Assembly: GCF_000737315.1 (NCBI RefSeq) | Contig: NZ_JMCB01000010.1 | Coordinates: forward strand, 186,001 to 250,000 | Direction: 5' to 3' | DNA length: 64,000 nt | Source: Hyalangium minutum | Lineage (GTDB): Bacteria > Myxococcota > Myxococcia > Myxococcales > Myxococcaceae | Shown: piece by piece, positions 10,393 to 60,417 of the stretch | Numbering within the stretch: the stretch's first letter is position 1 | Layout: every line of letters begins with the position of its first letter | Position numbers and translations under genes: made by a program | The notes under the pieces: model-generated | Databases searched by the model: none | The model's input: the letters and a program-made list of their open reading frames with translations, nothing else | Told to the model about the DNA's origin: nothing

Positions 10393-12342
10393 TCAAGGCG
10401 AGTACGTGCCCTTCATCGTCACGTTGGTGTAGGTGCTGTAGCCGCGCGAGCAGGCGTACCAGGTGCCCGCCGCCGGGCTGCTGATGGTGCACGTCTCCGT
10501 GCTGCCGCTCAGGTACGGACGGCAGGTGTAGCTGCTGGTCGTCGGAGCCGAGCCCTGCTTCACGAACAGGTCCGCGTCGCCCGTGGTGCCCGTCTTGCCC
10601 ACCTGGTTGAAGACCAGCGAGGTCTTCCCGCTCGGCACGCTCAGCGTGTAGCAGGTCATCGCGCCCGTGGCGCCCCCGTAAGGAGCCGTCTCCACGCCGT
10701 TGGCCAGCACGTTGCCACTGCTGCCCGTGGTGTACGAACCCTTCAGGCTCACGCCCGAGGCGGCCGAGTAGCCGAGGAGCTTCACGTAATAGGTGCCGGC
10801 GGTCGGGGTGGCGATGGTGCAGGTCTCCGTGTTGCCGTTCACTTCCGAGCGACAGTCGTACACGGTGCTGGTCGGCTCGGCGCCGGCCTTCACGTACAGG
10901 TCCGCGTCACCCGTGCCGCCGCTCAGGTTGAACGTCAGGTTGCTGGCGCCCGTCGGCACCGCCAGGGTGTACGCGCACGTCCAGGCGTTCGCGGCCACGG
11001 AGATACCCGACACCGTCACGCCGTTGGAGAGCGTCACCGGCGTGCACGTCGTGGGAGGAGTCCCGTCATCCGTCGGCGGCGGGGTGTTGCCCGTCGTCGC
11101 GCCCTTGGCCAGCTCGCCCAGGAAGGACACCGCCAACTTGGCGAACTTCACCGAGTTGTTCGCGGTGCCGCCCATGAAGGTCAGGGTGTCGCCCGTGGTG
11201 TGGATCTGCGGGTTGTCCGTGGTCATCGTTGCCTCGAAGGGCATCGTGGACGGGTAGCCCGCGCTGGTCCAAGAGGCGTGATCCGAGCAGCCGTAGCCGC
11301 AGGTGATGTTGGTGATCTTGGTGCCGCCCAAATCCGGCTGGTAGGTGTTGATGAGGCTGACGGTGAAGTTGTTCAGCGTGGCGTTGGTGTTGTCCGTCAC
11401 CATGGCGAACTCGTATTGGGAGCCCTTGTAGTTGGTCATGTCCAGCTGCAACACGCCCACCACGTTCGTCCCGGCGCTCTTGAACGAGTTGGCGATGGCG
11501 GCCGAGCCGTTCAGGCCCACCTCCTCGGCGGCATAGGCCATGAACTTCACCGTGCGCGCCGGCTTGTAGCCGTTGGCCACGGCCACGCGGAAAGCCTCGG
11601 TGAGCGAGGCCACGCCCGAGGCGTCGTCATCCGCGCCCGGAGCGGCGCCCGTGCTGCTGCTCTGGTTGATGGAGTCCAGGTGGCCGCCGATCACCACCAC
11701 CTCGTTGGGCAGCGTGGTTCCGGTGATGGTGGCAATCACGGACGGCTGCGTCCACGTATGCGTGAAGAGCGCCACGGAGATGTCCGAACGCCCGTTGGCG
11801 ATCGTCGTCCACTGGCTCTTCAGCCAGTTGGCCGCGTCCGCGCCCGCCTGCACGTTGTAGCGGCGCGTGGTGAAGTTGGTGGACAGCGAGTTGATGGTGT
11901 TGCGGATGTTGAGCTCCTGCACTCCGCTCAGCATCGCGTTCACCGACGGGCCGTTGTTGATGAAGTAGGAGGTGGCCAGCAGCGACGGCGGCGGCGGGCT
12001 GTTGGCGATGTCCACCTCCTTCAGGGCCTCGGCCTCGGAGTCAAAGGTCTTGAAGCCCGCGCAGCGGTTGAGCTTCGAGTGCATCACCCCGGCGATCTGG
12101 TCGATCTGCGACTCGGGAATGTTCAGCGCCGACACACCCCCCTTCTCCTTGAGCGGGGTGGCCAGCGCCAGGCCCTGGCCCGTGAAGGCCTCGCGCACCG
12201 TGGGCAGCGCGTCCGAGCCGATGGTGATCCACACCCTCTTCTCTTGCACCTTGTCCAACTTGCCTTGCTGCGGAGCCTGGGCGAACGCGGGAGCGGCACA
12301 GGCGAGACAAGCGATGATCGGAACGGATTTCCTCAGGGTCAT
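10393..12342 (-). CDS. Secreted M28 family leucyl aminopeptidase with two C-terminal PPC domains
   Basis: Signal peptide MTLRKSVPIIACLACAAPAFA; GGHLDS, GADDDASG, AAEEVGL, QLDMT, SDHASW, IHTTGD; two PPC repeats (GGTGDADLYVK, TGDADLFVK). Confidence 0.95.
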   Translation of the reverse strand: MTLRKSVPIIACLACAAPAFAQAPQQGKLDKVQEKRVWITIGSDALPTVREAFTGQGLALATPLKEKGGVSALNIPESQIDQIAGVMHSKLNRCAGFKTFDSEAEALKEVDIANSPPPPSLLATSYFINNGPSVNAMLSGVQELNIRNTINSLSTNFTTRRYNVQAGADAANWLKSQWTTIANGRSDISVALFTHTWTQPSVIATITGTTLPNEVVVIGGHLDSINQSSSTGAAPGADDDASGVASLTEAFRVAVANGYKPARTVKFMAYAAEEVGLNGSAAIANSFKSAGTNVVGVLQLDMTNYKGSQYEFAMVTDNTNATLNNFTVSLINTYQPDLGGTKITNITCGYGCSDHASWTSAGYPSTMPFEATMTTDNPQIHTTGDTLTFMGGTANNSVKFAKLAVSFLGELAKGATTGNTPPPTDDGTPPTTCTPVTLSNGVTVSGISVAANAWTCAYTLAVPTGASNLTFNLSGGTGDADLYVKAGAEPTSTVYDCRSEVNGNTETCTIATPTAGTYYVKLLGYSAASGVSLKGSYTTGSSGNVLANGVETAPYGGATGAMTCYTLSVPSGKTSLVFNQVGKTGTTGDADLFVKQGSAPTTSSYTCRPYLSGSTETCTISSPAAGTWYACSRGYSTYTNVTMKGTYSP

Positions 12343-16915: not shown

Positions 16916-18424
16916 ATGAGCCGTCCTCGTCCCAGCGTGGGCTGGCTCAGGAGGGTTCCCATCCCCCTGCTGCTCCTGACGCTCTGGGCTGTGGGCATCG
17001 GGCTCTTCTCGCTGAAGCAGGAGACGGAGCTCGCGGCCCACCGCGCCGAGGAGGAGGCCGTCCGGCTCCAGTACGACGTGGCGGAGCATGTGCGCACCAG
17101 CGTCCACGAGGCCCGCGAGCGGGTGCTGCGCACCACCGGGATGATGCTGGTGCTCGCGGGAGGGATGGGGCTCATCCTCCAGTTCTTCCTGGGGCGGCGC
17201 ATCCGGCATCTGGCGGCGGAGATCCAGGAGTTGGTGGATCAAATCCCCGGCGCCCAGCGGGCCGAGCCGCGTGAGGGAGACGCGCTGGTCAAGCTGGACG
17301 ACGCCTTCCGCCACATCGCGGAGCAGCTCGGCCGCAGCCGGGCGCGGCTCGAGGAGAACGAGGAGCGCTTCCAAACGATCATCGAGCGCTCACCGGACGC
17401 CACATTCATCCATTGGGAGGGGAACGTCGTCTTCAACAACCCGGCGGCGGCCACGCTGCTCGGCTATGAGCAGGCGGTGGAGCTTCAGGGCCGGAAGATC
17501 GAGGAGCTGATCGTCCCGGAGGACGCGCCCGTGCTGACGGATCCCTCGGCGGAGGGGACGCCCCGGGAGGTCCACTGGCTGCACCGCTCGGGGCGGAAGG
17601 TGCTGGGCGAGGTGGTGACGTTCCCCATGCTCTTCGAGCGGCAGCGGGTCCGGGTGTCAATCGTGCGGGACATCACCGAACGCAAGCAGCTGGAGCAGAA
17701 GCTGCGCACCGCCGACCGCATGGCCTCGCTGGGGACGCTGGCGGCGGGCGTGGCGCACGAGATCAACAATCCCCTCGCCTTCATGCAGAGCAACGTGCGC
17801 TTCGTCCTGGAGGAGCTGCGCTCGGTCGCCATGGACTCGGACCCGGCCAGCCGGAAGCGGCTGCTGGAGCTGGAAGAGGCGCTCCTGGAGACGCTGTCCG
17901 GTGGCGACCGGGTGAGCGACATCGTGCGGGATCTCAAGACGTTCTCGCGAGGGGACGACGGGGGCCACGGGCAGGTGAACATCCACAGAGTGCTGGACCT
18001 GTGTGCGAGCATCGCCCGGAACCAGCTCCGCCACCGCGCGAAGCTGGTGAAGAACTACGGTGAGGTTCCCCTCCTCCAGGCCAACGAGTCCCGGCTGGCG
18101 CAGCTCTTCCTGAACCTCATCATCAACGCCGCGCAAGCCATCCCCGAGGGCCGTGACGTGAACGCCAACGAGGTGCGCCTCACCACGCGGCAGGAGGGCT
18201 CCTGGGCGGTGGTGGAGGTCAAGGACACGGGGGTGGGCATCCCCCCGGAGAACCTGCACCGGCTGTTCGACCCGTTCTTCACTACCAAGCCTGTGGGAGT
18301 AGGGACAGGACTGGGCCTGTCCATCTGCCACGGCATCGTCACGGCCCTGGGAGGGCGCATCACCGTGGAGAGCGAGCCGGGCCAGGGGACCACCTTCCGC
18401 GTCTTCCTGCCTCTGAGCAGATGA
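16916..18424 (+). CDS. PAS-domain sensor histidine kinase
   Basis: Two TM segments, HAMP-like linker, PAS (ERSPD...VFNNPAA...RDITERK), H-box AGVAHEINNP, GLGLS G-box. Confidence 0.94.
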   Translation: MSRPRPSVGWLRRVPIPLLLLTLWAVGIGLFSLKQETELAAHRAEEEAVRLQYDVAEHVRTSVHEARERVLRTTGMMLVLAGGMGLILQFFLGRRIRHLAAEIQELVDQIPGAQRAEPREGDALVKLDDAFRHIAEQLGRSRARLEENEERFQTIIERSPDATFIHWEGNVVFNNPAAATLLGYEQAVELQGRKIEELIVPEDAPVLTDPSAEGTPREVHWLHRSGRKVLGEVVTFPMLFERQRVRVSIVRDITERKQLEQKLRTADRMASLGTLAAGVAHEINNPLAFMQSNVRFVLEELRSVAMDSDPASRKRLLELEEALLETLSGGDRVSDIVRDLKTFSRGDDGGHGQVNIHRVLDLCASIARNQLRHRAKLVKNYGEVPLLQANESRLAQLFLNLIINAAQAIPEGRDVNANEVRLTTRQEGSWAVVEVKDTGVGIPPENLHRLFDPFFTTKPVGVGTGLGLSICHGIVTALGGRITVESEPGQGTTFRVFLPLSR

Positions 18425-18492
18425 GCAAATGCATCTCTAAGCGAGGTCTGCGTGACTTCTCTTATGCTGGCACCCATGAATGGGCTCCGTGC

Positions 18493-18993
18493 ATGAAGAA
18501 CAAGAGAGGCGTCGAGGAAACCGAGTTGCTCCGAGAGGCCGCGCAAGAAAGACCGGGAGGTCAGCAGACTGCGCGGAAGGCTGCAGCCATCCTGGTCGAT
18601 TCTGGCCAGGGGTTCATCCTGCCCACGGCAGCACAGCGACGAGCGCTACTCATTGCGTTCGCCCAGGCCGGCTTCGTCATCTATGGGAAAGCCTTTGATG
18701 CGGTGAAGATCAAGGTGCCCATCGACCTGACGGATCCAGAAGATATTGGCCGTCACTTGGACGACCTTGTCATCTACGAGATCAAGTCCACGGGGAAGTC
18801 CACTGTCCAACCTGACTTCCGGCGCTATTTTTTTTCGCTCTCCACCGCTGAGTTGCTTGTTGCCCAGAATTTGGGGAAGCGCTTCAAATTCGTGTTTGTC
18901 AACACGCTGACGCGCCACCATGTCGAGCTCTCCCTGCCGGAGGTCTTCGCTCGCGCTCGCGGCATCTACCCCACCTGGAGCATCCAATTCTGA
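18493..18993 (+). CDS. PD-(D/E)XK nuclease-like protein (DUF3883/NOV_C-like)
   Basis: AFDAV...IYEIKST...YFFSLSTAELLVA...FVFVN pattern. Visibly more A/T-rich than its neighbours. Start 18493 (ORF track starts at 18421). Confidence 0.6.
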   Translation: MKNKRGVEETELLREAAQERPGGQQTARKAAAILVDSGQGFILPTAAQRRALLIAFAQAGFVIYGKAFDAVKIKVPIDLTDPEDIGRHLDDLVIYEIKSTGKSTVQPDFRRYFFSLSTAELLVAQNLGKRFKFVFVNTLTRHHVELSLPEVFARARGIYPTWSIQF

Positions 18994-52877: not shown

Positions 52878-53654
52878 CTACTTGCGGTGACCGGCAGCCG
52901 CCAGTATCAGCTTGGCGATGTCCTGTGGGTGTGAGACCAGGGACAGGTGGCCTGCCTCCAACTCCACGGTTGAGGCGTTCATGCGGTGTGCCAGAAAGCG
53001 CTGGAGGTCCGGCGCGATGGTCTGATCCTGCTTCGACACCGCATACCAACTCGGCTTGGAGTGCCAGGCGGCCGCGGTGGTCTTCTCCGCGAACAGCGAG
53101 GCCGCAGCCGGCTGTTGCACGGCATACAGGATCTTCGCCTTCTCGCGCGAGACACCGTTCGCGAAGTACTTGAGAAAGGGGTCCTCGGAGATGGTGGTGA
53201 AGCCCTCGCGCTCCTGGACGCCGGCCCGCACGGGCGTGGTGGGGTACTTTTGGGAGAGGGCGACGAAGTCCTCGCCCGCATCGGGTGCGCGAGCGGCCAC
53301 GTACACGAGCGCCGTCACCTTTGGGTCGGTCCCTACCTCACTGATGACGGTCCCCCCCCAAGAGTGGGCGACCAGCACGGTGGGGCCCTTCTGCACCGCC
53401 AAGGCCCGTCGCGTCGCGGCGACGGAATCGGCGAGCGATGTCAGTGGATTCTGCACCGAAGTCACCTGCAACCCGGCAGCTTGCAACCGTTGAATGACTT
53501 CGCTCCAACTCGAGCCGTCCGCCCAGGCGCCGTGCACCAGTACGACGTGGGTCGCCTTGACCGAGGGGGGCGGCTGCGCTGACGCCTCCGTCGTCAAGAA
53601 GACCGTTGAAAGGATACCGAAGAGGGTCACTGTCCATGTGTGTAGCGTCTTCAT
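52878..53654 (-). CDS. Secreted alpha/beta hydrolase (Abhydrolase_6)
   Basis: Signal peptide from MKTLHTW; LVHGAWADGSSW, AHSWGG, QDQTI, GHLSL. Confidence 0.93.
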   Translation of the reverse strand: MKTLHTWTVTLFGILSTVFLTTEASAQPPPSVKATHVVLVHGAWADGSSWSEVIQRLQAAGLQVTSVQNPLTSLADSVAATRRALAVQKGPTVLVAHSWGGTVISEVGTDPKVTALVYVAARAPDAGEDFVALSQKYPTTPVRAGVQEREGFTTISEDPFLKYFANGVSREKAKILYAVQQPAAASLFAEKTTAAAWHSKPSWYAVSKQDQTIAPDLQRFLAHRMNASTVELEAGHLSLVSHPQDIAKLILAAAGHRK

Positions 53655-53930
53655 CCGCCAGTCTCCTCTCGTGAGCCATGGGCTCCGGCACGGTTCCCCC
53701 TCATGCATGAGCGTGAAGGTGAAGTGGCCAGCAGCCGCTGCCAAGGTGCCAAAGAGGGCGAGGACGCCGCGGGTAGACTGGGCATGGCTGCTGCGGCGCA
53801 CGCCAGGCGCTCCATCTCCTCTCTCGCTCGCAGCCGTGCCCTGTTCTTTGATCAGCACGTCCCGAAGCCGGCGCGCTGAGGACGCGCGCACGGCCAGAGG
53901 TGGCCAAGCTCCGCAGCGGGAGATGAGGAG

Positions 53931-54074
53931 TGGAGGCGGCGGGAATCGAACCCGCAGCAAGGCGGAAGCAAAACCCTAAGCAGGTCGCGCTGTTACCGGC
54001 TAACGCCTTGATCTCACACCAGATAGTTCCCCCGCTCCGTCCCGTCTCGTCCCGTTTTCATCCCCGCTGGAGGG
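53931..54074 (-). repeat. Repeat copy 1 (left part): tmRNA 3'-end-like att fragment plus arm sequence
   Basis: Minus strand GCGGGTTCGATTCCCGCCGCCTCCA = T-arm + CGCCTCC-A acceptor strand (U70, as in tmRNA). About 140 bp highly similar to 58705-58868. Continues at 56041-56060 beyond the intron. Confidence 0.85.
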
Positions 54075-56040
54075 GTAGAGTCGACGGGAGGCGCGGTGCC
54101 GCTCGGGTTCGTCAGCGCCTGCTGCGAGGGTCCACTTTCGCTCGCCCTCTCGCCGAGTCTCACCCACGGTCCGTTTCCTCCACGCCGCTCATCGAACCGG
54201 ACGTGCAGATTTCCTGCATCCGGCTCTCGGACAGGTTTCACGCGACGCGTCTCAGCGCAGGAGCGCACGTACCTCCAGTACTCCAAGGTTCCGGTGCACC
54301 TCGTTGTACTTGAAGCGTGACGTAGCTCGCGCCATCTCGTGCCTCCTGCTCAGGAAGTTCCTCACCCGTTCTGTGACGTGCCAGTCCAGCACGTTGAACG
54401 CGTGCATCGACGAGTCGTAGGCAAAGTACGTCGCCCACCCTCGCAGGAACAGGTTGAGCTCGCCCGCTATCTCCTCCCAGCGCTCCGTCCTGCCGCGCCG
54501 GAGGATTCGGCTCACTTCACCTCGGGCGTGCTCCATTGCCTTCTTCGAAGGTCGGGCTCCCAGGTACTTCTGGCCGGTCTTCTTGTAGACCAGTGGCCCC
54601 AGCTCGTACCCCAGAAAGCGGAAATGCTCCTTCCGCGCATCGCGAATGCTCGTCTTCGTCTCGTTGAGCGTCAGCTTCATCCCAGCGAGCCACCTCTTCA
54701 CTTGCGCCAACACCTCTGTGGCTCCCTTGCGGGCTACCACCACGAAGTCATCGGCGTAGTTGACGATCTTCGCTCCGCTCCTCTTCATCAGCTCGCTCTG
54801 GGCGAACACCTTCAGCAACCGGTTGATGTAGATGTTCGCCAGCAGCGGTGAGATGACACCGCCCTGCGGTGTCCCCTGCTTCGAGCGCTTGCCTCCGCTG
54901 TACTTCGGGCGTCCCTGCTCGTCCCTCTCTTCCACAGGCACCTTCAGCCACATCTTCAAAAGATGCAGCACCGCCTTGTCCGCAACTCTCCTCGCGACGC
55001 TCTTCATCAGCTCCGCGTGGGGAATCGTGTCGAAGTACTTCGAGAGATCCGCATCGACCACTTGGGTTCGCCCCTGCTTCAGCTCCTGATGAACCTCCTT
55101 GACCGCATCCACCGCACTGCGTCCGGGTCGGTACCCGTAGGCAGCCTCGCTCAAGTCGGCCTCGAAGATTGGCTCCAGAATGAGCTTCGCCGCCGTCTGG
55201 ACCACACGATCTCTGATCGTGGGGATACCCAGAGGCCGCTCGCCTCCCCCTGGCTTGGGTATCAGCACCCTCCTCACGGGCTGGGGCCGATACGTCTTCC
55301 CTTGCAGCTCGCGCTGCAACTCCTCAAGCCAACGCTCCTCGCCGTACGCCTCGATCTGCTCGAAGGTCTGTCCGTCCACTCCTGCGGCGCCCCGCTTCTG
55401 TTTCGACTGCTTGAGCGCCTCCGTCAGGACGTCCCGCCGATGGATCTTGTCGTACAGCGCGTAGAACCGGAACGTCGGCTCCGCCTTGGCCTTCGCGTAC
55501 AGCTTCGCTCGGAGCTCTTCGAGCTTTGTAGGGGTTGTTAGGCTCACGCCAATCTCCCGCTGCGTCCGCTCCTTGCGAAGCACCCTGAACCAGGGCTCCT
55601 TCCCTCCACGGTCGTTACCCGCTTCATCGGTAGTACGAGCCCCTCCGACTCCTGGCCTCCGCCACGCTCCAAGGGCGTGTTCGGGTCGCTTTCCCGCTCG
55701 GACCAGGTCTCCCGTGTTGCGCACTTCACCGTGTGCTCACATGCCGCGCCCCACTACCCCGGTGGTCCACCCGGCGGCGATGCTGTCGACCTTCTCGCCG
55801 GGTGCTTGGCCTTCCCTGTATGTGCGCCAGGTCGGCTCCCACGATTGCCCTTTCGGGGCCTGCTCGGGCTTCACTCACGTTGCGGCCTGCGAACTCGCTC
55901 GACCTCCTTTCGAGGCCTTCTGTCTCTGGGCTTCGAGTCCCAGAGTCGCCTCTCGTCCCCGCCAGATAGCTACCGAGGGGGTCGACTTCCTCCTCGGGCG
56001 GGACTTCCTCCCGCTGGTCAAGTGCACCTTCACGGCGCAC
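54075..56040 (-). mobile_element. Group II intron
   Basis: 5' end GTGCGCCGTG at 56040; domain V GAGAGCCGGATGCAGGAAATCTGCACGTCCGGTTCGATGAGCGGCG (about 54183-54228); 3' end ...GACTCTAC at 54075; internal RT/maturase ORF. Confidence 0.92.
54252..55547 (-). CDS. ltrA: Group II intron reverse transcriptase/maturase (no endonuclease domain)
   Basis: RFYALYDK, RPLGIPTIRDRVVQ, GTPQGGVISPLLANIY, YADDF, FLGY, LRGWATYF. GTG start 55547 after a GGGAG RBS. Confidence 0.95.
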   Translation of the reverse strand: MSLTTPTKLEELRAKLYAKAKAEPTFRFYALYDKIHRRDVLTEALKQSKQKRGAAGVDGQTFEQIEAYGEERWLEELQRELQGKTYRPQPVRRVLIPKPGGGERPLGIPTIRDRVVQTAAKLILEPIFEADLSEAAYGYRPGRSAVDAVKEVHQELKQGRTQVVDADLSKYFDTIPHAELMKSVARRVADKAVLHLLKMWLKVPVEERDEQGRPKYSGGKRSKQGTPQGGVISPLLANIYINRLLKVFAQSELMKRSGAKIVNYADDFVVVARKGATEVLAQVKRWLAGMKLTLNETKTSIRDARKEHFRFLGYELGPLVYKKTGQKYLGARPSKKAMEHARGEVSRILRRGRTERWEEIAGELNLFLRGWATYFAYDSSMHAFNVLDWHVTERVRNFLSRRHEMARATSRFKYNEVHRNLGVLEVRALLR

Positions 56041-56585
56041 GCACATACGGGGCACATGCGGCCCAACTCGGTTCAATGCCGCGAGGCCCGCGTGCCACCA
56101 GACCGCCTGAGAAGGTATTGACCAAGAGCAGCCAAGCAAGTGAGATAGCGCACTTCAGGAGCATGGCCGCTTGCAGGGGAGTCGTGCATCAGGGGACAGG
56201 GGTGAGGGAGTTTGTCGCTCCGTCAGCCGCCTGCGGCAGAGTCCTCAGAGGTGCCCGCCTGCGTGGCTGTTCGGAAATGTCGGGACTTTTGCGCCTAAAA
56301 ACCCCTGATATTTCCGGGCAGTGGGCCCACGAGTTGGGCGGTCGACCGGGCCCCAGACAGAGGCCATAAGTCTCCCCAGACGTGGTCACACGCTTCCTTC
56401 GGCCATGCGCTCACTAGCTGCTTCGATCGCTCAAGCCATCTCAACACATTCTGATCACGTACGACAATTGTGGGCGTTGAGTGTGGTACGCTGGACTTCA
56501 AGGGCTCTCTATCTCGCGGCATCAATAGATTCGAGTCTCACCGAGCGGCCCAATGTGCTTATTACCTAACGGAGAGGCAATCCGA

Positions 56586-58007
56586 ATGTGCCGTCTTGTT
56601 CTCGCATGCCTATTGCTTGTCAACTGGCTCGGGTGTGTCACTACAGCTTCGAGGCCTCATGAGGAATCACCCGCCAATGAGCAACCCAGCGCTCATGATT
56701 TCCAATCAGAGATCTTCCGGAAAGATCAGCAACTTCACAAGACTCTCAATGGCGGGAATGAGAGTGCTATCGGGCTGGGGGCTACTGGAGAGTTCGTGAA
56801 ACTCCTTCAGCAGGCGTTGCAACAAATAGGTTATGGCGCACTCTTGAAGAAAAAGCCTGACGGGGTGTTTGACGATGAAACCAGACAAGCCGTCGAACAG
56901 TTTCAGCAGAACCAGGATCTCATGAGCGATGGTGTCGTCGGCAGTCAGACGCTCGCAGAGCTTGATCTACTCATGTCACGCCATGAGAGTAGCAGTCTGT
57001 CAGAAGAAGATGATGATGATTTTTCCTTCCGACCGTTTGTGCTGGGCCCTCTCCAGCGCTTGGGATCCACAGGCTCTGGGCATGCAAATGTTTCTCCCCA
57101 AGTTGCTCTGGCCATCCTCGACAACATGGCTAAGACGAAGGGGCAGATTAGCTTCATTCCTGATAAAGGAGGGGTTGGCCAATGCTCTTGGTTCACCATC
57201 GAAGGAGATCCGTATGTCGGAAAGCTTGCTGGAAAACCTATCAAGCTTGATGTGGCCCTTAAAATCCCTGATAACGCGCTCGTTTTCAAGGAGGCGGAAC
57301 TGGTCCAACGCATAAAGGACAAGGCCCAAGCTTTCGACGCAGAGGCGGACTACCGGCAGCGCAAGAACATCCCTAAGAATCAAGAACTCTCGTCTCGCCA
57401 AAAAGAGATAGTCCGCAGGTTGCACCGAACTAGGCCCGAGCAACTCGTCTGGAATGAGGTAGGCCAAGAGGTTCAGAGGCACCCATCAAAGATAGGGATT
57501 ATTGAATACGATGGCGTCGATCGAGGCGATTGGTCTCTCTCTAAGAACAGACCAGGGAAAACGGTCGCTGTCGCGGATGGTTCGAAGATTACGATCAAGG
57601 GCGGTGTAGGTGCTGTTGTCGAGGCGCTGCAAAGCAAAGGATATGGCGTCGATCCTACCCTTCGGGAAGCCGCCGAGACCCTTGTTCGAAGAGCAAAAAA
57701 TGTGGCCAAGGTCAAGGGTGTGTTCAAGTATGGCGGACGGGTGCTCATTGTTGTTGGTGCGGTCGCAGATGGTTACCGTATCTATCGCGCCGAGAACAAA
57801 CTTAAGGAGACCGTAAAAGTTGCTGGTGGGTGGGCTGGAGCCTCGGCTGCCGCAGCCCTCTTTTCTGCCTTTTGGGTGCCTGCTGATACTGCAGGACCCA
57901 TCGCTTGGGGCGTCCATGGTGTAGGTGTACTGGTCGCCGGAGGCGTTGGCTATTTCGTTGGTAGTAAAGCCACAACGTACGTGTACGAACTTGTGTTGGA
58001 GGAGTAG
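56586..58007 (+). CDS. Lipoprotein with PG-binding domain, uncharacterised central domain and hydrophobic Gly/Ala-rich C-terminus (putative toxin)
   Basis: Lipobox NWLGC; PG_binding_1 motif GATGEFVKLLQQAL...DGVFDDET..AV.QFQ...DGVVG..T; C-terminal GRVLIVVGAV...GGWAGASAAA...GGVGYFVG. A/T-richer DNA. Confidence 0.8.
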   Translation: MCRLVLACLLLVNWLGCVTTASRPHEESPANEQPSAHDFQSEIFRKDQQLHKTLNGGNESAIGLGATGEFVKLLQQALQQIGYGALLKKKPDGVFDDETRQAVEQFQQNQDLMSDGVVGSQTLAELDLLMSRHESSSLSEEDDDDFSFRPFVLGPLQRLGSTGSGHANVSPQVALAILDNMAKTKGQISFIPDKGGVGQCSWFTIEGDPYVGKLAGKPIKLDVALKIPDNALVFKEAELVQRIKDKAQAFDAEADYRQRKNIPKNQELSSRQKEIVRRLHRTRPEQLVWNEVGQEVQRHPSKIGIIEYDGVDRGDWSLSKNRPGKTVAVADGSKITIKGGVGAVVEALQSKGYGVDPTLREAAETLVRRAKNVAKVKGVFKYGGRVLIVVGAVADGYRIYRAENKLKETVKVAGGWAGASAAAALFSAFWVPADTAGPIAWGVHGVGVLVAGGVGYFVGSKATTYVYELVLEE

Positions 58008-58009
58008 CA

Positions 58010-58591
58010 ATGCTCTCACGCAAAGAACTCATCGACATCTTGGCGAATCTGGCCGCGCCATTGACTCCCTTCACTCTCGAAGGAGCGCCAGAGGACGGCA
58101 CACTCTTCATAGACTGGCTTGAGCGGCGCAGCCAGGAACAGTTTAATCGAATCCAAGGCGACGCGGTAAATGCCTTCATTGATATCGTGCTCCATCCACC
58201 GGAACTTCACGAGTACGTTCCACCAGCCAGGGATGAAGAGTCTTTCAGGACCGAGTTCCTTGGATTGGCCGAGTCTTACAGCAACTCGCTGCATGCACCC
58301 CGGATCATTAAAGGCATTGAACCCGCGCTTCAGCTTCCCTCCCAGCGGCGTTGGGCTGTTGATGTATTGGGAAGATTGAAGACTTATGAGGCACTCCCCC
58401 TTCTCCATGCGTTCGCCGCGAGTAACCTAACAAAAGAAGAAGAAATGCATATCATTGAGGCCCTTGGAGAGAGAGCCGAGCCAGAAGCCCGGGCTTTGCT
58501 GGAGGAGTTGCATAGGCGTTGTCTTGAGCCTGAAGCACAGGCCAGGATCAATACATTGCTCCGACGCTTCAAGAGTGTTGAGCAGGAGTGA
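58010..58591 (+). CDS. Cytoplasmic helical (HEAT-repeat-like) protein, putative immunity partner
   Basis: Starts 2 bp after the previous stop; RRWAVDVLGRLKTYEALPLL...IIEALGE..EPEARALL HEAT-like pattern. Confidence 0.7.
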   Translation: MLSRKELIDILANLAAPLTPFTLEGAPEDGTLFIDWLERRSQEQFNRIQGDAVNAFIDIVLHPPELHEYVPPARDEESFRTEFLGLAESYSNSLHAPRIIKGIEPALQLPSQRRWAVDVLGRLKTYEALPLLHAFAASNLTKEEEMHIIEALGERAEPEARALLEELHRRCLEPEAQARINTLLRRFKSVEQE

Positions 58592-58704
58592 GCAGGACCA
58601 AGACACTCAGGGCGGCCATCAGCCACACGCTTGCTGTTACTGTCCCTGGCTGGCCCTTGGTAGGTCATGCTCGATTATTCCCTCTATTGCTAGGCATCTC
58701 AGGA

Positions 58705-58887
58705 TGGAGGCGGCGGGAATCGAACCCGCATCAAGGCGGAAGCAAAACCCCAAGCAGGTCGCGTTGTTACCGGCCAACGACTTGATCTCACACCGGATCG
58801 TTCCCCCGCCCCGTCCCGTCTCGTCCCGTCTCGTCCCGTCTCGTCCCGTTCAATTCCCCGCCGGAGGGTCACACTGGGGCACATGCG
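58705..58887 (-). repeat. Repeat copy 2: tmRNA 3'-end-like att fragment plus arm sequence with 10-bp VNTR
   Basis: Same 25-bp tmRNA-like end as 53931 and same orientation; CGTCCCGTCT x3 (58812-58841); ends GGGGCACATGCG. Confidence 0.85.
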
Positions 58888-59012: not shown

Positions 59013-60236
59013 TCACGGCGTGTACAGTTCCGCCCAGTACAAAGCATTGCCACCGAACACCAGCACCCTGCCCGAGGACAGCAGCGTGGTCGTGTGGGGA
59101 GCCCAGTGGGGATGGACGAGGCGTCCGGTGGGCGACCAGGTTCCCGTTTCCGGGTCGTACACCTCCGCCGATTGGGCGCTTTCCAAGGAGCCGGAAACGC
59201 TGGAACGGCCGCCGCCCACCACCAGCACCTTGCCCGAGGGCAGCAGCACGGCCGTGTGGCCATCGCGGCCGATGGCGAGGCTGCCGGTGCGCGACCAGGT
59301 GCCCGTCTCCGGATCGTACACCTCCGCCGTGAGGGTCCCTCCGGCCGCCACCAGCACCTTGCCCGAGGGCAATAGCGTGGCTGTGTAAGCATAGCGAGAC
59401 ATGGCGAGACTGCCAGTCCGTGACCAGGTACCCGTCCCCGGGTCATACACCTCCGCATCTTTGCCGTCCGTCACCAGCACCTTACCCGAGCGCAGCAGTA
59501 CGGCCGTGTAGCCTTCGAGGCTCGTGTTGGGGGTGAGCGAGGAGGTTCCCGTTTCCGGGTCGTACACCTCCGCCTTGTTGAAGTACTCCTCGTCCGTCGC
59601 GCCGCCCAATACCAGCACCTTGCCCGAGGGTAGCAGCGTGGCCGTGTGGCCAGAGCGGCCCGTGGCGAGGCTGCCGGTGCGTGACCAAGTGCCCGTCCCC
59701 GGGTCGTACACCTCCGCCGTGGCGAGGGTGGGACTGTCCCACCCATCGACGCCGTCGGGGTTATAGCCGCCCAACACCAGCACCTTGCCCGAGGGCAGCA
59801 GCGTGGCCGTGTGGGAATAGCGGGCCGTGACGAGGCTGCCGGTGGGCGACCAGGTGCCCGTCTTCGGATCGTACACCTCACACCCGGCATACGCCCTGAG
59901 ATAATCGCCGCCCGTTATCAGCACCTTGCCCGAGGGCAGCAGCGTGGTCGTGTAATCGTCAAGGAAATGGCCTCCCATGGCGGGGCTGCTGGTGGAGGAC
60001 CATGTCTGGGGAGTGCCTGAATCCTCACCTGCGGGTGGCGCGCCACAGCCTTCGAGGCTCGACTGGCAGTCGTCACTCGGCGCATGCTCGAGGCCGAGAC
60101 AGCCGGAGAGGAATGCCAGCAATCCCACCATCAGCAGCATGAAAGACGGCAGCGAGGGCTCTTTTACGCGCCGGAGCCTGAACCCGAGGCTGCTGGCTGC
60201 GGCGGGCACATGTTCATCAGGGGTATGAAAAGACAT
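59013..60236 (-). CDS. Kelch-repeat lipoprotein
   Basis: Lipobox-like FLSGC; repeated HTATLLPSGKVLV.GG....AEVYDP.TGTWS units. Start MSFHTP at 60236 after a GGGAGG RBS. Confidence 0.92.
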   Translation of the reverse strand: MSFHTPDEHVPAAASSLGFRLRRVKEPSLPSFMLLMVGLLAFLSGCLGLEHAPSDDCQSSLEGCGAPPAGEDSGTPQTWSSTSSPAMGGHFLDDYTTTLLPSGKVLITGGDYLRAYAGCEVYDPKTGTWSPTGSLVTARYSHTATLLPSGKVLVLGGYNPDGVDGWDSPTLATAEVYDPGTGTWSRTGSLATGRSGHTATLLPSGKVLVLGGATDEEYFNKAEVYDPETGTSSLTPNTSLEGYTAVLLRSGKVLVTDGKDAEVYDPGTGTWSRTGSLAMSRYAYTATLLPSGKVLVAAGGTLTAEVYDPETGTWSRTGSLAIGRDGHTAVLLPSGKVLVVGGGRSSVSGSLESAQSAEVYDPETGTWSPTGRLVHPHWAPHTTTLLSSGRVLVFGGNALYWAELYTP

Positions 60237-60417
60237 ACGCGGGACCTCCCTTGGGGTTGCACGGAGCAAAGAGAGGGCGCGTTCGCGGCTCAAGACCGCT
60301 GAAAATCCTGGGGTAAAGTGCCCGGAAAACGCGCCGACTCCTTATCCACCAAGCAGGACGGAGTTCCAGCCGCGAGGCTGGGGAGGAGAACCGCGTGGGA
60401 GCAGCACGAGGAGCCGG

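Follow-up and report, generated by a model that had tools for sequence, protein, structure and literature searches.

The window analysed here is a 64,000-nucleotide (nt) stretch of the myxobacterium Hyalangium minutum (contig NZ_JMCB01000010.1, positions 186,001 to 250,000), and the subject is a pair of direct repeats within it, each of which ends in a copy of the 3' end of transfer-messenger RNA (tmRNA, the product of ssrA). The repeats bracket a small, foreign cassette of two genes. The explanation favoured here, with a probability of about 0.6, is that they are integrase-less remnants of integrative elements that were stacked at attachment (att) sites with a tmRNA core, each repeat unit representing an attP arm plus the core.

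Two direct copies of a unit with a tmRNA-like core

The 25-mer GCGGGTTCGATTCCCGCCGCCTCCA matches the window exactly twice, both times on the minus strand (53931-53955 and 58705-58729), where the number expected by chance is zero even if three mismatches are allowed. The two repeat copies share 125 nt at 94% identity (53931-54055 versus 58705-58829), and beyond this segment their likeness runs on through 10-nt GGGACGAGAC repeats, of which the left copy has two and the right copy four. Each unit is ~190 nt long, both are in direct orientation, and the order within the unit is a 5' motif of 30 nt, (GGGACGAGAC)n, a conserved middle and, at the very end, the tmRNA-like core. The sequence GGGGCACA proved to be a piece of CGCATGTGCCCC, the conserved motif at the 5' end. 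The right copy, which ends at 58887, has it contiguous with the remainder of the repeat, whereas in the left copy a 1,966-nt group II intron separates it (56049-56060) from the remainder. An inverted-repeat scan gave no overall palindromic symmetry for the repeat.

These data confirm the initial annotation in its description of two direct repeats with a tmRNA 3' end, shared sequence and short internal repeats, and its statement that neither an integrase nor ssrA is in view also holds. Pfam and signature scans found no Phage_integrase domain or HxLRH signature between the repeats or elsewhere in the window. Using ARAGORN (and, for the window, Rfam also), no tRNA or tmRNA gene was found in the window or in a 9.7 kb rightward extension, which consisted of two stretches of the same contig (GCA_000737315.1, JMCB01000010.1) and reached to about window coordinate 73.7 kb. 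This extension contained no further core, motif or tRNA, except for an integrase/intron relic at ~70.9-71.3 kb.

Only the end of the unit is derived from tmRNA

Together with a preceding GGAC, the 25-mer was found at no fewer than 120 metagenome loci. ARAGORN called tmRNA genes ending in the 25-mer, with many different tags, at 81 of the 120 loci listed, and the 25-mer is therefore a widespread and genuine tmRNA 3' end. Alignment of the unit with a genuine high-GC tmRNA (L072, tag ANDNVELALAA) covers the last 39 nt only, and the remaining ~155 nt upstream score 16 against the L072 tmRNA, compared with 18.9 ± 2.4 for shuffled sequences. The tmRNA-derived part of the unit is thus limited to its last 35-39 nt, and the other ~155 nt are arm-like and without tmRNA similarity. 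Presumably the ssrA gene of Myxococcus itself has a tag of the L072 type and this same 3' end. An arm devoid of tmRNA likeness joined to 35-39 nt of tmRNA would be the expected appearance of an attP-derived 'arm plus tDNA fragment' (tDNA: tRNA or tmRNA gene) in the Islander framework (PMC4383910).

It could be argued instead that the unit encodes a small RNA, tRNA-like or a 'mini-tmRNA', in many gene copies that serve as integrase targets in the way that tRNA genes do. Indeed, the two ends of the Rfam tmRNA model both aligned to a segment of 106 nt in the unit, and at one locus (L044) a unit occupies the place held by tRNA-Leu in another (L045). However, the Rfam match lacks the 324-nt middle of the model and reaches only 26.3 bits (gathering score, 47), and since the upstream 155 nt score no better than shuffles against real tmRNA, the 5'-end match is an artefact; a 'mini-tmRNA' with both tmRNA ends was rejected accordingly. 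Taken with a negative ARAGORN result, this means that the unit does not have the makings of a functional tmRNA gene. Nor is there any sign of a functional RNA fold: single-sequence folding energies are no better than those of shuffles (z from 0.07 to 1.4), RNAalifold found no compensatory pairs across 28 copies, and pairing of the T-arm and putative acceptor stands at 93.8% versus 93.5 ± 0.3% in column shuffles, with mutated copies breaking pairs without compensation. Because no RNA fold shows covariation, the copies behave as DNA sites, and a small-RNA gene is a very improbable explanation of the unit.

The only ARAGORN call among the units was a 422-nt 'tmRNA' at L033 (2520-2941), which has a nonsense 30-aa tag, borrows the tmRNA-like 3' end of the unit and has no Rfam support. 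Such units can seed false tmRNA annotations. A separate observation comes from L013 (5602-5633), where a T-arm fragment after GGAGGC reads GGAGGCAGCGGGTTCGATTCCCGCAGCCTCCACC, a perfect acceptor/T-arm 'minihelix', followed by CC; this may be due to chance or may be another kind of target site.

A family of dispersed units in the Myxococcaceae

Representative genomes were scanned for exact matches to a 23-nt pattern taken from the non-T-arm part of the repeat. Thirty-nine loci were recovered, one of which (in Trebonia) is a chance match. The other 38 lie in 11 assemblies of Myxococcaceae, representing at least five genera, and the hosts include Hyalangium versicolor (six contigs), three Hyalangium metagenome-assembled genomes (MAGs; up to seven loci per genome), Cystobacter fuscus, Corallococcus terminator, Pyxidicoccus caerfyrddinensis and other MAGs. 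Since only exact matches were counted, these numbers are minima; a profile search recovered two further copies, a diverged one in Myxococcus xanthus and another in Corallococcus sp. EGB. Tandem copies are present at 10 loci and form 11 adjacent pairs, all of them direct, which has a probability of ~0.0005 under random orientation.

All-against-all BLAST of the loci gave no long near-identical blocks. The family is thus old and diverged, and the idea of recent mobility was dropped as unsupported. Known phages, plasmids and IMG/VR proviruses contained no match to the unit. A conserved neighbouring protein family was also considered and rejected, as clustering of all flanking open reading frames (ORFs) yielded only spurious ORFs overlapping the repeat.

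The segments between copies are 1-4 kb long, usually of lower GC, and carry conflict genes. Elsewhere in the family the cargo between or beside units comprises an MmeI-like restriction-modification enzyme (L010), a lipoprotein with Imm26 (L040), DUF6310 with DUF5953 (L022 and L013), ParA with Schlafen/AlbA_2 (L029) and AAA with SLOG (L014). In L033 a Tox-PAAR-like toxin gene is located directly downstream of a unit and its junction with the class A sequence described below.

These observations bear on the simplest of the alternatives, namely that an immobile intergenic sequence underwent ordinary segmental duplication and that cargo arrived independently between existing copies. The 94% identity of the two copies in the window and the lack of a mobility gene for the cassette are in keeping with such an origin, but it would have to account for a unit with defined ends at 38 or more unrelated loci in 11 assemblies, with recurrent foreign cargo and with integrase and transposase relics nearby, and it is considered the most improbable of the explanations.

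Two sets of genes recur at the edges of units. A DUF5953 gene is found immediately upstream of units in L013 (4236-5120) and L022 (1267-2127, there paired with a DUF6310 lipoprotein), the C-terminal coding sequence of DUF5953 (..YERFPEIGGR) lies beside units in L025 and L029, and a 29-aa remnant is present in L044; DUF6310/DUF5953 may be a myxobacterial pair of the toxin/immunity type that moves together with the unit. Sigma-54-type (NtrC-like) regulator genes abut the unit, 3' end to 3' end, in L010 (469-1359), L022 (3-1009) and L027 (4161-5256). These regulator genes, from three loci in two genomes, are paralogous, with 76-84% DNA identity.

Integrase relics and the class A sequence

A tyrosine-recombinase stub of a single type, comprising the C-terminal ~60 residues, was found at two of the 38 scan loci (L014 and L034). 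In M. faecalis its reading direction leads to a hairpin/T-run terminator and the 3' end of a genuine tRNA-Leu(GAG) gene beside secG-tpiA-pgk-gap. The stub of Corallococcus sp. EGB, which is of the same kind, points at the T-arm end of a unit ~90 nt away, the unit there standing in the place of the tRNA gene. This layout is the usual one of a tDNA end, a P' arm and an inward-reading integrase.

The intervening DNA can be followed at several loci. L014 shows, in this order, the core, a class A sequence with its hairpin and T-run terminator complete, a second copy of the 30-nt motif, and the stub; in L043 (Corallococcus CA054B) a diverged class A sequence, a second motif copy and the stub are present, with no T-arm left. 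Class A at other loci continues in the same manner, as a hairpin and T-run terminator, then a motif copy and then the integrase stub. In the window, 58704-58686 corresponds to the start of class A and is cut off at a point shared by five independent loci (the window, L003, L010, L011 and L033), and this 19-nt remnant may be read as a truncated P' arm. Moreover, class A after a left core is always paired with a type-1 unit that closes the right side (window, L005, L010, L014 and L029).

When compared with known phages, the stub gave generic lambdoid integrases as its best matches (58%). An attP inside the integrase gene, as in phage Mx8, was considered as the cause of the uniform stub size and rejected as a geometric misfit, because it is the 3' end of the stub, and not its truncated 5' end, that faces the core.

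A group II intron in the motif of the unit

The DNA that interrupts the left copy (54075-56040) has every hallmark of a group II intron, with domain I-IV and V/VI signatures, ends of the GUGYG..AY type and an ORF for a reverse transcriptase and maturase. The Rfam models group-II-D1D4-4 (RF02003) and Intron_gpII domain V/VI (RF00029) match at 55875-56016 (96.6 bits) and 54075-54228 (44 bits), respectively. Since this intron splits the left copy, 40% of the supposed cargo is in fact intron within the left repeat. The initial annotation had placed A/T-richer cargo between the repeats; this is correct for 56400-58600, where the GC content is 52-56% as against 65-70% in the flanks and ~67% in the genome, but not for the 1,966 of the 4,774 nt between the two 25-mers that belong to the intron.

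The intron, or internally deleted remnants of it (90-92% identity), occupies an identical position in units of the window, L010 and L023, which represent three genomes, the common insertion point being ...TGTG[A/C]|GTGCGCC.... A fourth, truncated copy is at the usual position in a P'-side variant of the motif ~12 kb to the right of the window's repeats (L046). The shared insertion point indicates that the intron homes specifically into the 30-nt motif of the unit. Intron positions 216-223 (GCACATAC, window 55818-55825) are perfectly complementary to the end of the 5' exon, GTATGTGC (56041-56048). The family consensus at this end is CAGTGTG[A/C], with CAGTGTGC and CAATGTGA at the other occupied sites; the complementarity suggests either the choice of a matching target or co-conversion of the exon.

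The relic in L046 (~18180-18650, window ~70.9-71.3 kb) begins with the last ~25 codons of an integrase of the same type, ..RTTAHPPAARRSGL*, which is followed by the P'-side motif variant split by the truncated second intron copy, with the 3' exon CCCTCTGGCGTCTCTAGCCC. Beyond the intron relic lies a gene of 462 aa with 50-55% GC that matched no family.

A model of serial integration at retained cores

On the favoured explanation, each unit would consist of an element-derived arm (the 30-nt motif and one to four GGGACGAGAC repeats, the latter possibly arm-binding sites for the integrase) and of the last 35-39 nt of tmRNA, which would be the crossover site. Elements of this lineage would have integrated successively at the cores that were retained, leaving a direct-repeat series with cargo in between. 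The inner element of the window, which runs from 58704 down to 53931 on the minus strand, would have lost its integrase and most of its other arm, so that what remains is a 19-nt P' stub, the two-gene cassette, a P arm with the intron, and the core. With its integrase lost such an element would be non-autonomous, that is, either dead or mobile only with an integrase supplied in trans. The group II intron, recognizing the 30-nt motif, would have homed into the left unit later. The inner element is positioned downstream of another unit, which would be solitary or else mark the right end of an older element on the side of the Kelch gene. We infer that recombination at the core built the arrays, that the repeats have an arm-site role and that the cargo has a toxin/immunity function.

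The initial annotation had proposed a serial accretion of 'cargo plus att' units, giving a cassette-like array or non-autonomous elements mobilized in trans. In its favour are the stubs aimed at the unit or at tRNA-Leu and the direct orientation of 11 of 11 adjacent pairs; the link to IS91-family remnants set out below offers a different route of mobilization.

Several observations weigh against the model. No intact tmRNA gene accompanies the unit at any of the 38 loci (the L033 call being spurious), and a unit dispersed to as many as seven loci per genome is not what an integrase with a single attB would predict; the arrangement in the window is not a local event at ssrA. No intact integrase was found next to any unit, and the best 120 of 190 relatives of the stub, from Corallococcus, Myxococcus, Archangium and metagenomes, are all 58-129 aa long. 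Since no intact copy was found and only two of 38 loci carry the stub, catalysis by this integrase family is a presumption of the model. Furthermore, the unit has sharp 5' and 3' boundaries that are common to loci with unrelated flanks: three copies all begin at TTAGCCGG and five all end at AGCAAT. Such shared boundaries point to a site-specific process there that a simple integrase model leaves unexplained. Finally, 14 of 40 copies run upstream across a fixed junction, via a hairpin in which both sides of the stem vary, into the N-terminal part of an oppositely oriented gene that encodes a Zn_Tnp_IS91 domain (Pfam, 1.2e-17) and has relatives that also carry Y2_Tnp. The dispersal to many loci other than ssrA and the sharp outer boundaries are not accounted for by the model as it stands, and the IS91-like association may account for them.

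IS91-family relics at the boundary of the unit

Taken further, this association leads to a different explanation, in which the unit is the terIS-like end of a rolling-circle element of the IS91 family (Y2 HUH), with the T-arm as the subterminal palindrome and CTCC as the cleavage tetranucleotide. Unit copies, and unit-cargo-unit blocks, would then come from rolling-circle or one-ended transposition, with read-through followed by termination at the next end, as when ISCR/IS1294 elements capture neighbouring genes. In relatives of IS91, terIS is upstream of tnpA, with a single subterminal palindrome bordering the cleavage site (CTCG or GTTC), and it fails in 1-50% of events, mobilizing the DNA beyond (PMC13181058). 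The junction between unit and IS91-like gene is also present in M. xanthus. Moreover, there is a second junction type (L007 and L022), in which the upstream region of the IS91-like gene is joined directly to the same T-arm end, and in L012 a bare core is found ~100 nt from a remnant of the gene. At the unit boundary upstream of the IS91-like remnant, the palindrome GCGGGTTCGATTCCCGC is followed by CGC-CTCC, which resembles the description of terIS in PMC13181058. Nested alternative 3' boundaries and the multi-copy dispersal fit this explanation as well.

However, no intact IS91-like transposase was found: all copies of the gene in relatives are truncated or frameshifted (at most 255 aa), and the window has none. 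An oriIS with a conserved target tetranucleotide could not be defined at the 5' boundaries, where the flanks show only a loose ..CC preference, and one remnant of the gene in C. fuscus has no unit beside it. Copies made by a rolling circle should have a fixed ori end and a variable ter end, yet many units vary on their 5' side. An IS91-type end also gives no reason for integrase stubs that are aimed at the unit or at tRNA-Leu, or for the exact match to a tmRNA 3' end. This explanation is the main rival of the favoured one, and is judged unlikely.

The C. fuscus remnant (L167, ANAH02000007, 10001-12923) is located directly upstream of a 683-aa aerolysin-domain gene with 53-60% GC. In M. xanthus (L041, CP017169; 6001-6750 and ~10592-11024) the IS91-like gene is apparently split, with the N-terminal part by the unit and a C-terminal-like part ~4 kb away; RibD_C, Cas3_HD and a 585-aa HEAT_2 gene are found between the two halves.

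The two kinds of relic could also be combined in an ancestral element whose attP was flanked by an integrase gene on one side and an IS91-like Y2 gene on the other. As a transposase or a rolling-circle replication initiator, the Y2 enzyme would have scattered the units around the chromosome, and their cores would then have been extra landing pads for cassettes mobilized by the integrase. If the left ends (core, class A, motif and stub) are overlaid on the right ends (IS91-like gene, hairpin, motif, repeats and core), a contiguous int-attP-tnp arrangement results, and an element of this kind would account for the dispersal as well as for the direct arrays of small cassettes. The reconstruction draws on different loci, however; at no single locus do a stub and an IS91-like remnant enclose one and the same cargo, neither gene was found intact, and such an ancestor is regarded as quite unlikely.

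Cargo and flanking genes of the window

The features of the window locus are collected in Table 1. The predicted lipoprotein encoded by cargo gene 1 contains a PG_binding_1 domain (Pfam, E = 3.5e-16) and has a Gly-rich, hydrophobic C-terminus; residues 148-473 matched no family, and PDB matches were confined to the PG-binding domain. The protein is a candidate envelope-targeting toxin. Cargo gene 2 begins 3 nt past the stop codon of gene 1, in the same orientation, is on record in this assembly only, and is a candidate for the immunity partner. In the two cargo proteins of the window no toxin domain or Imm family was found, only the lipobox, PG_binding_1 and HEAT_2. A toxin/immunity function for the cassette is plausible, given the gene arrangement and the cargo at other loci.

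Past the left repeat, the alpha/beta hydrolase gene has an orthologue in H. versicolor that is 83% identical and lies in an unrelated, non-syntenic neighbourhood. Because of this, and because of its host-level GC content, the gene looks like chromosomal flank rather than a part of the element, and nothing points to its belonging to a neighbouring unit, as had been suggested at the outset. The hydrolase (52878-53858) has thousands of relatives, many of them 72-80% identical and non-myxobacterial, some from Burkholderiales or Gammaproteobacteria; the differing neighbourhood in H. versicolor suggests that the gene is itself horizontally mobile. On the other side, the Kelch-repeat gene could be part of an older upstream element with copy 2 as its right end, although no left end is in view. 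The repeat families D1 (122 nt) and D2 (77 nt), at window 59051-59964, are Kelch-motif repeats of this gene and not mobile DNA.

Table 1. Coordinates and properties of the repeat units, the intron, the cargo and the flanking genes in the window.
Feature	Position	Strand	Details
Right repeat (unit copy 2), uninterrupted	58705-58887	-	nhmmer profile match 58894-58686, 222 bits; aligned with 27 other copies
5' motif of right repeat, CGCATGTGCCCCAGTGTGACCCTCCGGCGGGG	58856-58887	-	
Four GGGACGAGAC repeats of right repeat	about 58808-58849	-	Followed by conserved middle (..GCCGGTAACAACGCGACCTGCTT..), then tmRNA-like core
tmRNA-derived core of copy 2, GCTTCCGCCTTGATGCGGGTTCGATTCCCGCCGCCTCCA	58705-58743	-	T-arm, 3' acceptor strand and discriminator A; no CCA encoded
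'Class A' flank remnant after right copy, TCCTGAGATGCCTAGCAAT	58686-58704	-	First ~19 nt of the longer class A sequence
5' piece of left repeat (unit copy 1), CGCATGTGCCCCGTATGTGC	56041-56060	-	First 20 nt of the copy; 5' exon of the intron
3' piece of left repeat (unit copy 1)	53931-54074	-	CCCTCCAGCGGGG.., two GGGACGAGAC, middle, core 53931-53969; nhmmer match 54077-53924, 179 bits
Group II intron, 1,966 nt	54075-56040	-	Ends GTGCG...CTAC; at the conserved motif of the unit; Rfam and Pfam
Intron reverse transcriptase/maturase ORF, 490 aa	54252-55724	-	Pfam RVT_1 8.8e-39, GIIM 2.8e-12
Non-coding/leader DNA between 5' piece of left repeat and cargo gene 1	56061-56585		GC drops from 63% to 53% across it
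Cargo gene 1, 473-aa predicted lipoprotein	56586-58007	+	Signal/lipobox MCRLVLACLLLVNWLGC; GC 52-56%
Cargo gene 2, 193-aa HEAT-repeat protein	58010-58591	+	Pfam HEAT_2, E = 1.4e-6; GC 54-55%
Alpha/beta hydrolase gene just past left repeat	52878-53681	-	Pfam Abhydrolase_6, 1.4e-23; GC 65-68%
Kelch-repeat gene past right repeat	59013-60293	-	Pfam Kelch families

Novelty and implications

Islands that target tDNA, decayed att remnants and gene capture by IS91 elements are all already known. In the literature, no description of this tmRNA-core unit family was found. What appears to be undescribed is a conserved att module with a tmRNA core that occupies several loci per genome and is spread across a bacterial family, and also the bracketing of very small conflict cassettes by this module, the presence of integrase and IS91 relics on its opposite sides, and its dedicated group II intron. 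The consistent pairing of relics of a tyrosine integrase and of an IS91-family transposase, one on each side of an att region, together with an intron that homes into the att arm, makes an unusual set of associations.

Myxobacteria use large and fast-changing sets of toxin/immunity and defence genes in kin discrimination and competition, and how such cassettes move is poorly understood. A tDNA-derived module flanking them would provide a testable route for their gain and loss, and a sequence tag for genome searches. Standard island finders would miss every unit locus, because they look for an integrase together with an intact tDNA. Should the copies prove to be mere fossils, they would amount to a tidy case of element decay with little wider consequence.

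A broader and more tentative proposal, rather unlikely to hold in full, is that the Myxococcaceae carry a cassette system that is integron-like and mechanistically distinct, in which the ~190-nt module with a tmRNA 3' end is present at many sites as a set of distributed landing pads. The module would perhaps be copied by an IS91-family Y2 enzyme in a one-ended rolling-circle process, integrase-less toxin/immunity and defence cassettes would be gained and lost through an integrase acting in trans, and an intron lineage would have specialized on the arm motif.

Comparison with known systems

The myxophages Mx8 and Mx9 integrate site-specifically (PMC11610982), and the int gene of Mx8 spans attP (PMC4383910). 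They share with the present family a myxobacterial tyrosine-integrase system and an attachment logic of the tDNA type. Unlike in Mx8, the integrase stop codon here lies outside the core, ~90-170 nt away, and neither the unit nor the stub matches a known phage.

Elements of the IS91/ISCR type have a Zn_Tnp_IS91/Y2 gene, an upstream end with one subterminal palindrome by a CTCG-like tetranucleotide, capture of adjacent genes and no inverted repeats (PMC13181058). The unit loci resemble them in the gene and in the lack of inverted repeats, and may do so in the upstream end and in gene capture. They differ in that only decayed copies of the gene are present, no oriIS or target tetranucleotide could be made out, the end reproduces the 3' end of tmRNA precisely, and integrase stubs occur.

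There are close parallels with tDNA-targeting islands. Genomic islands and prophages are integrated at tmRNA and tRNA genes by tyrosine integrases, tandem arrays included, in what has been called 'traffic at the tmRNA gene'. Tandem islands at tDNAs arise by successive integration (Islander framework, PMC4383910). As in such islands, a 3' tDNA fragment lies in the direct repeat at the ends, in the same orientation, with conserved DNA of attP size (~200-250 nt) around it; in relatives the integrase gene reads toward the tDNA end; and there is serial stacking with foreign cargo of lower GC. By contrast, no intact tRNA or tmRNA gene is present at either end and no integrase inside, so that the Islander filters would reject the window element. 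Further differences are that both repeats are full arm-plus-core units instead of one gene and one short fragment, that many loci per genome are occupied and not ssrA alone, and that the enclosed segments are very small (1-4 kb).

Another model is that of the cis-mobilisable elements (CIMEs) of Streptococcus, which, in the work on ICESt3, are said to derive from decayed integrative elements and to undergo accretion at att sites. As in CIMEs, the presumed att sites in the window are kept while the recombination genes are lost, and retained att sites would be open to new elements, giving tandem composites that are mobile with help in trans. The differences from CIMEs are that no partner element with a working integrase was identified, and that the host lineage and the scale of dispersal are not the same.

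Finally, the arrays may be compared with those of integrons. No IntI (in the window) or attI is present, the repeat is a tDNA-derived att unit and not the imperfect palindrome of attC, and the arrays have two or three repeats only and are scattered. Like integron arrays, however, they consist of cassettes of one to three genes, separated by a repeated, presumed recombination site in the same orientation and carrying conflict or adaptive cargo. Integron attC sites, too, are known targets of group II introns.

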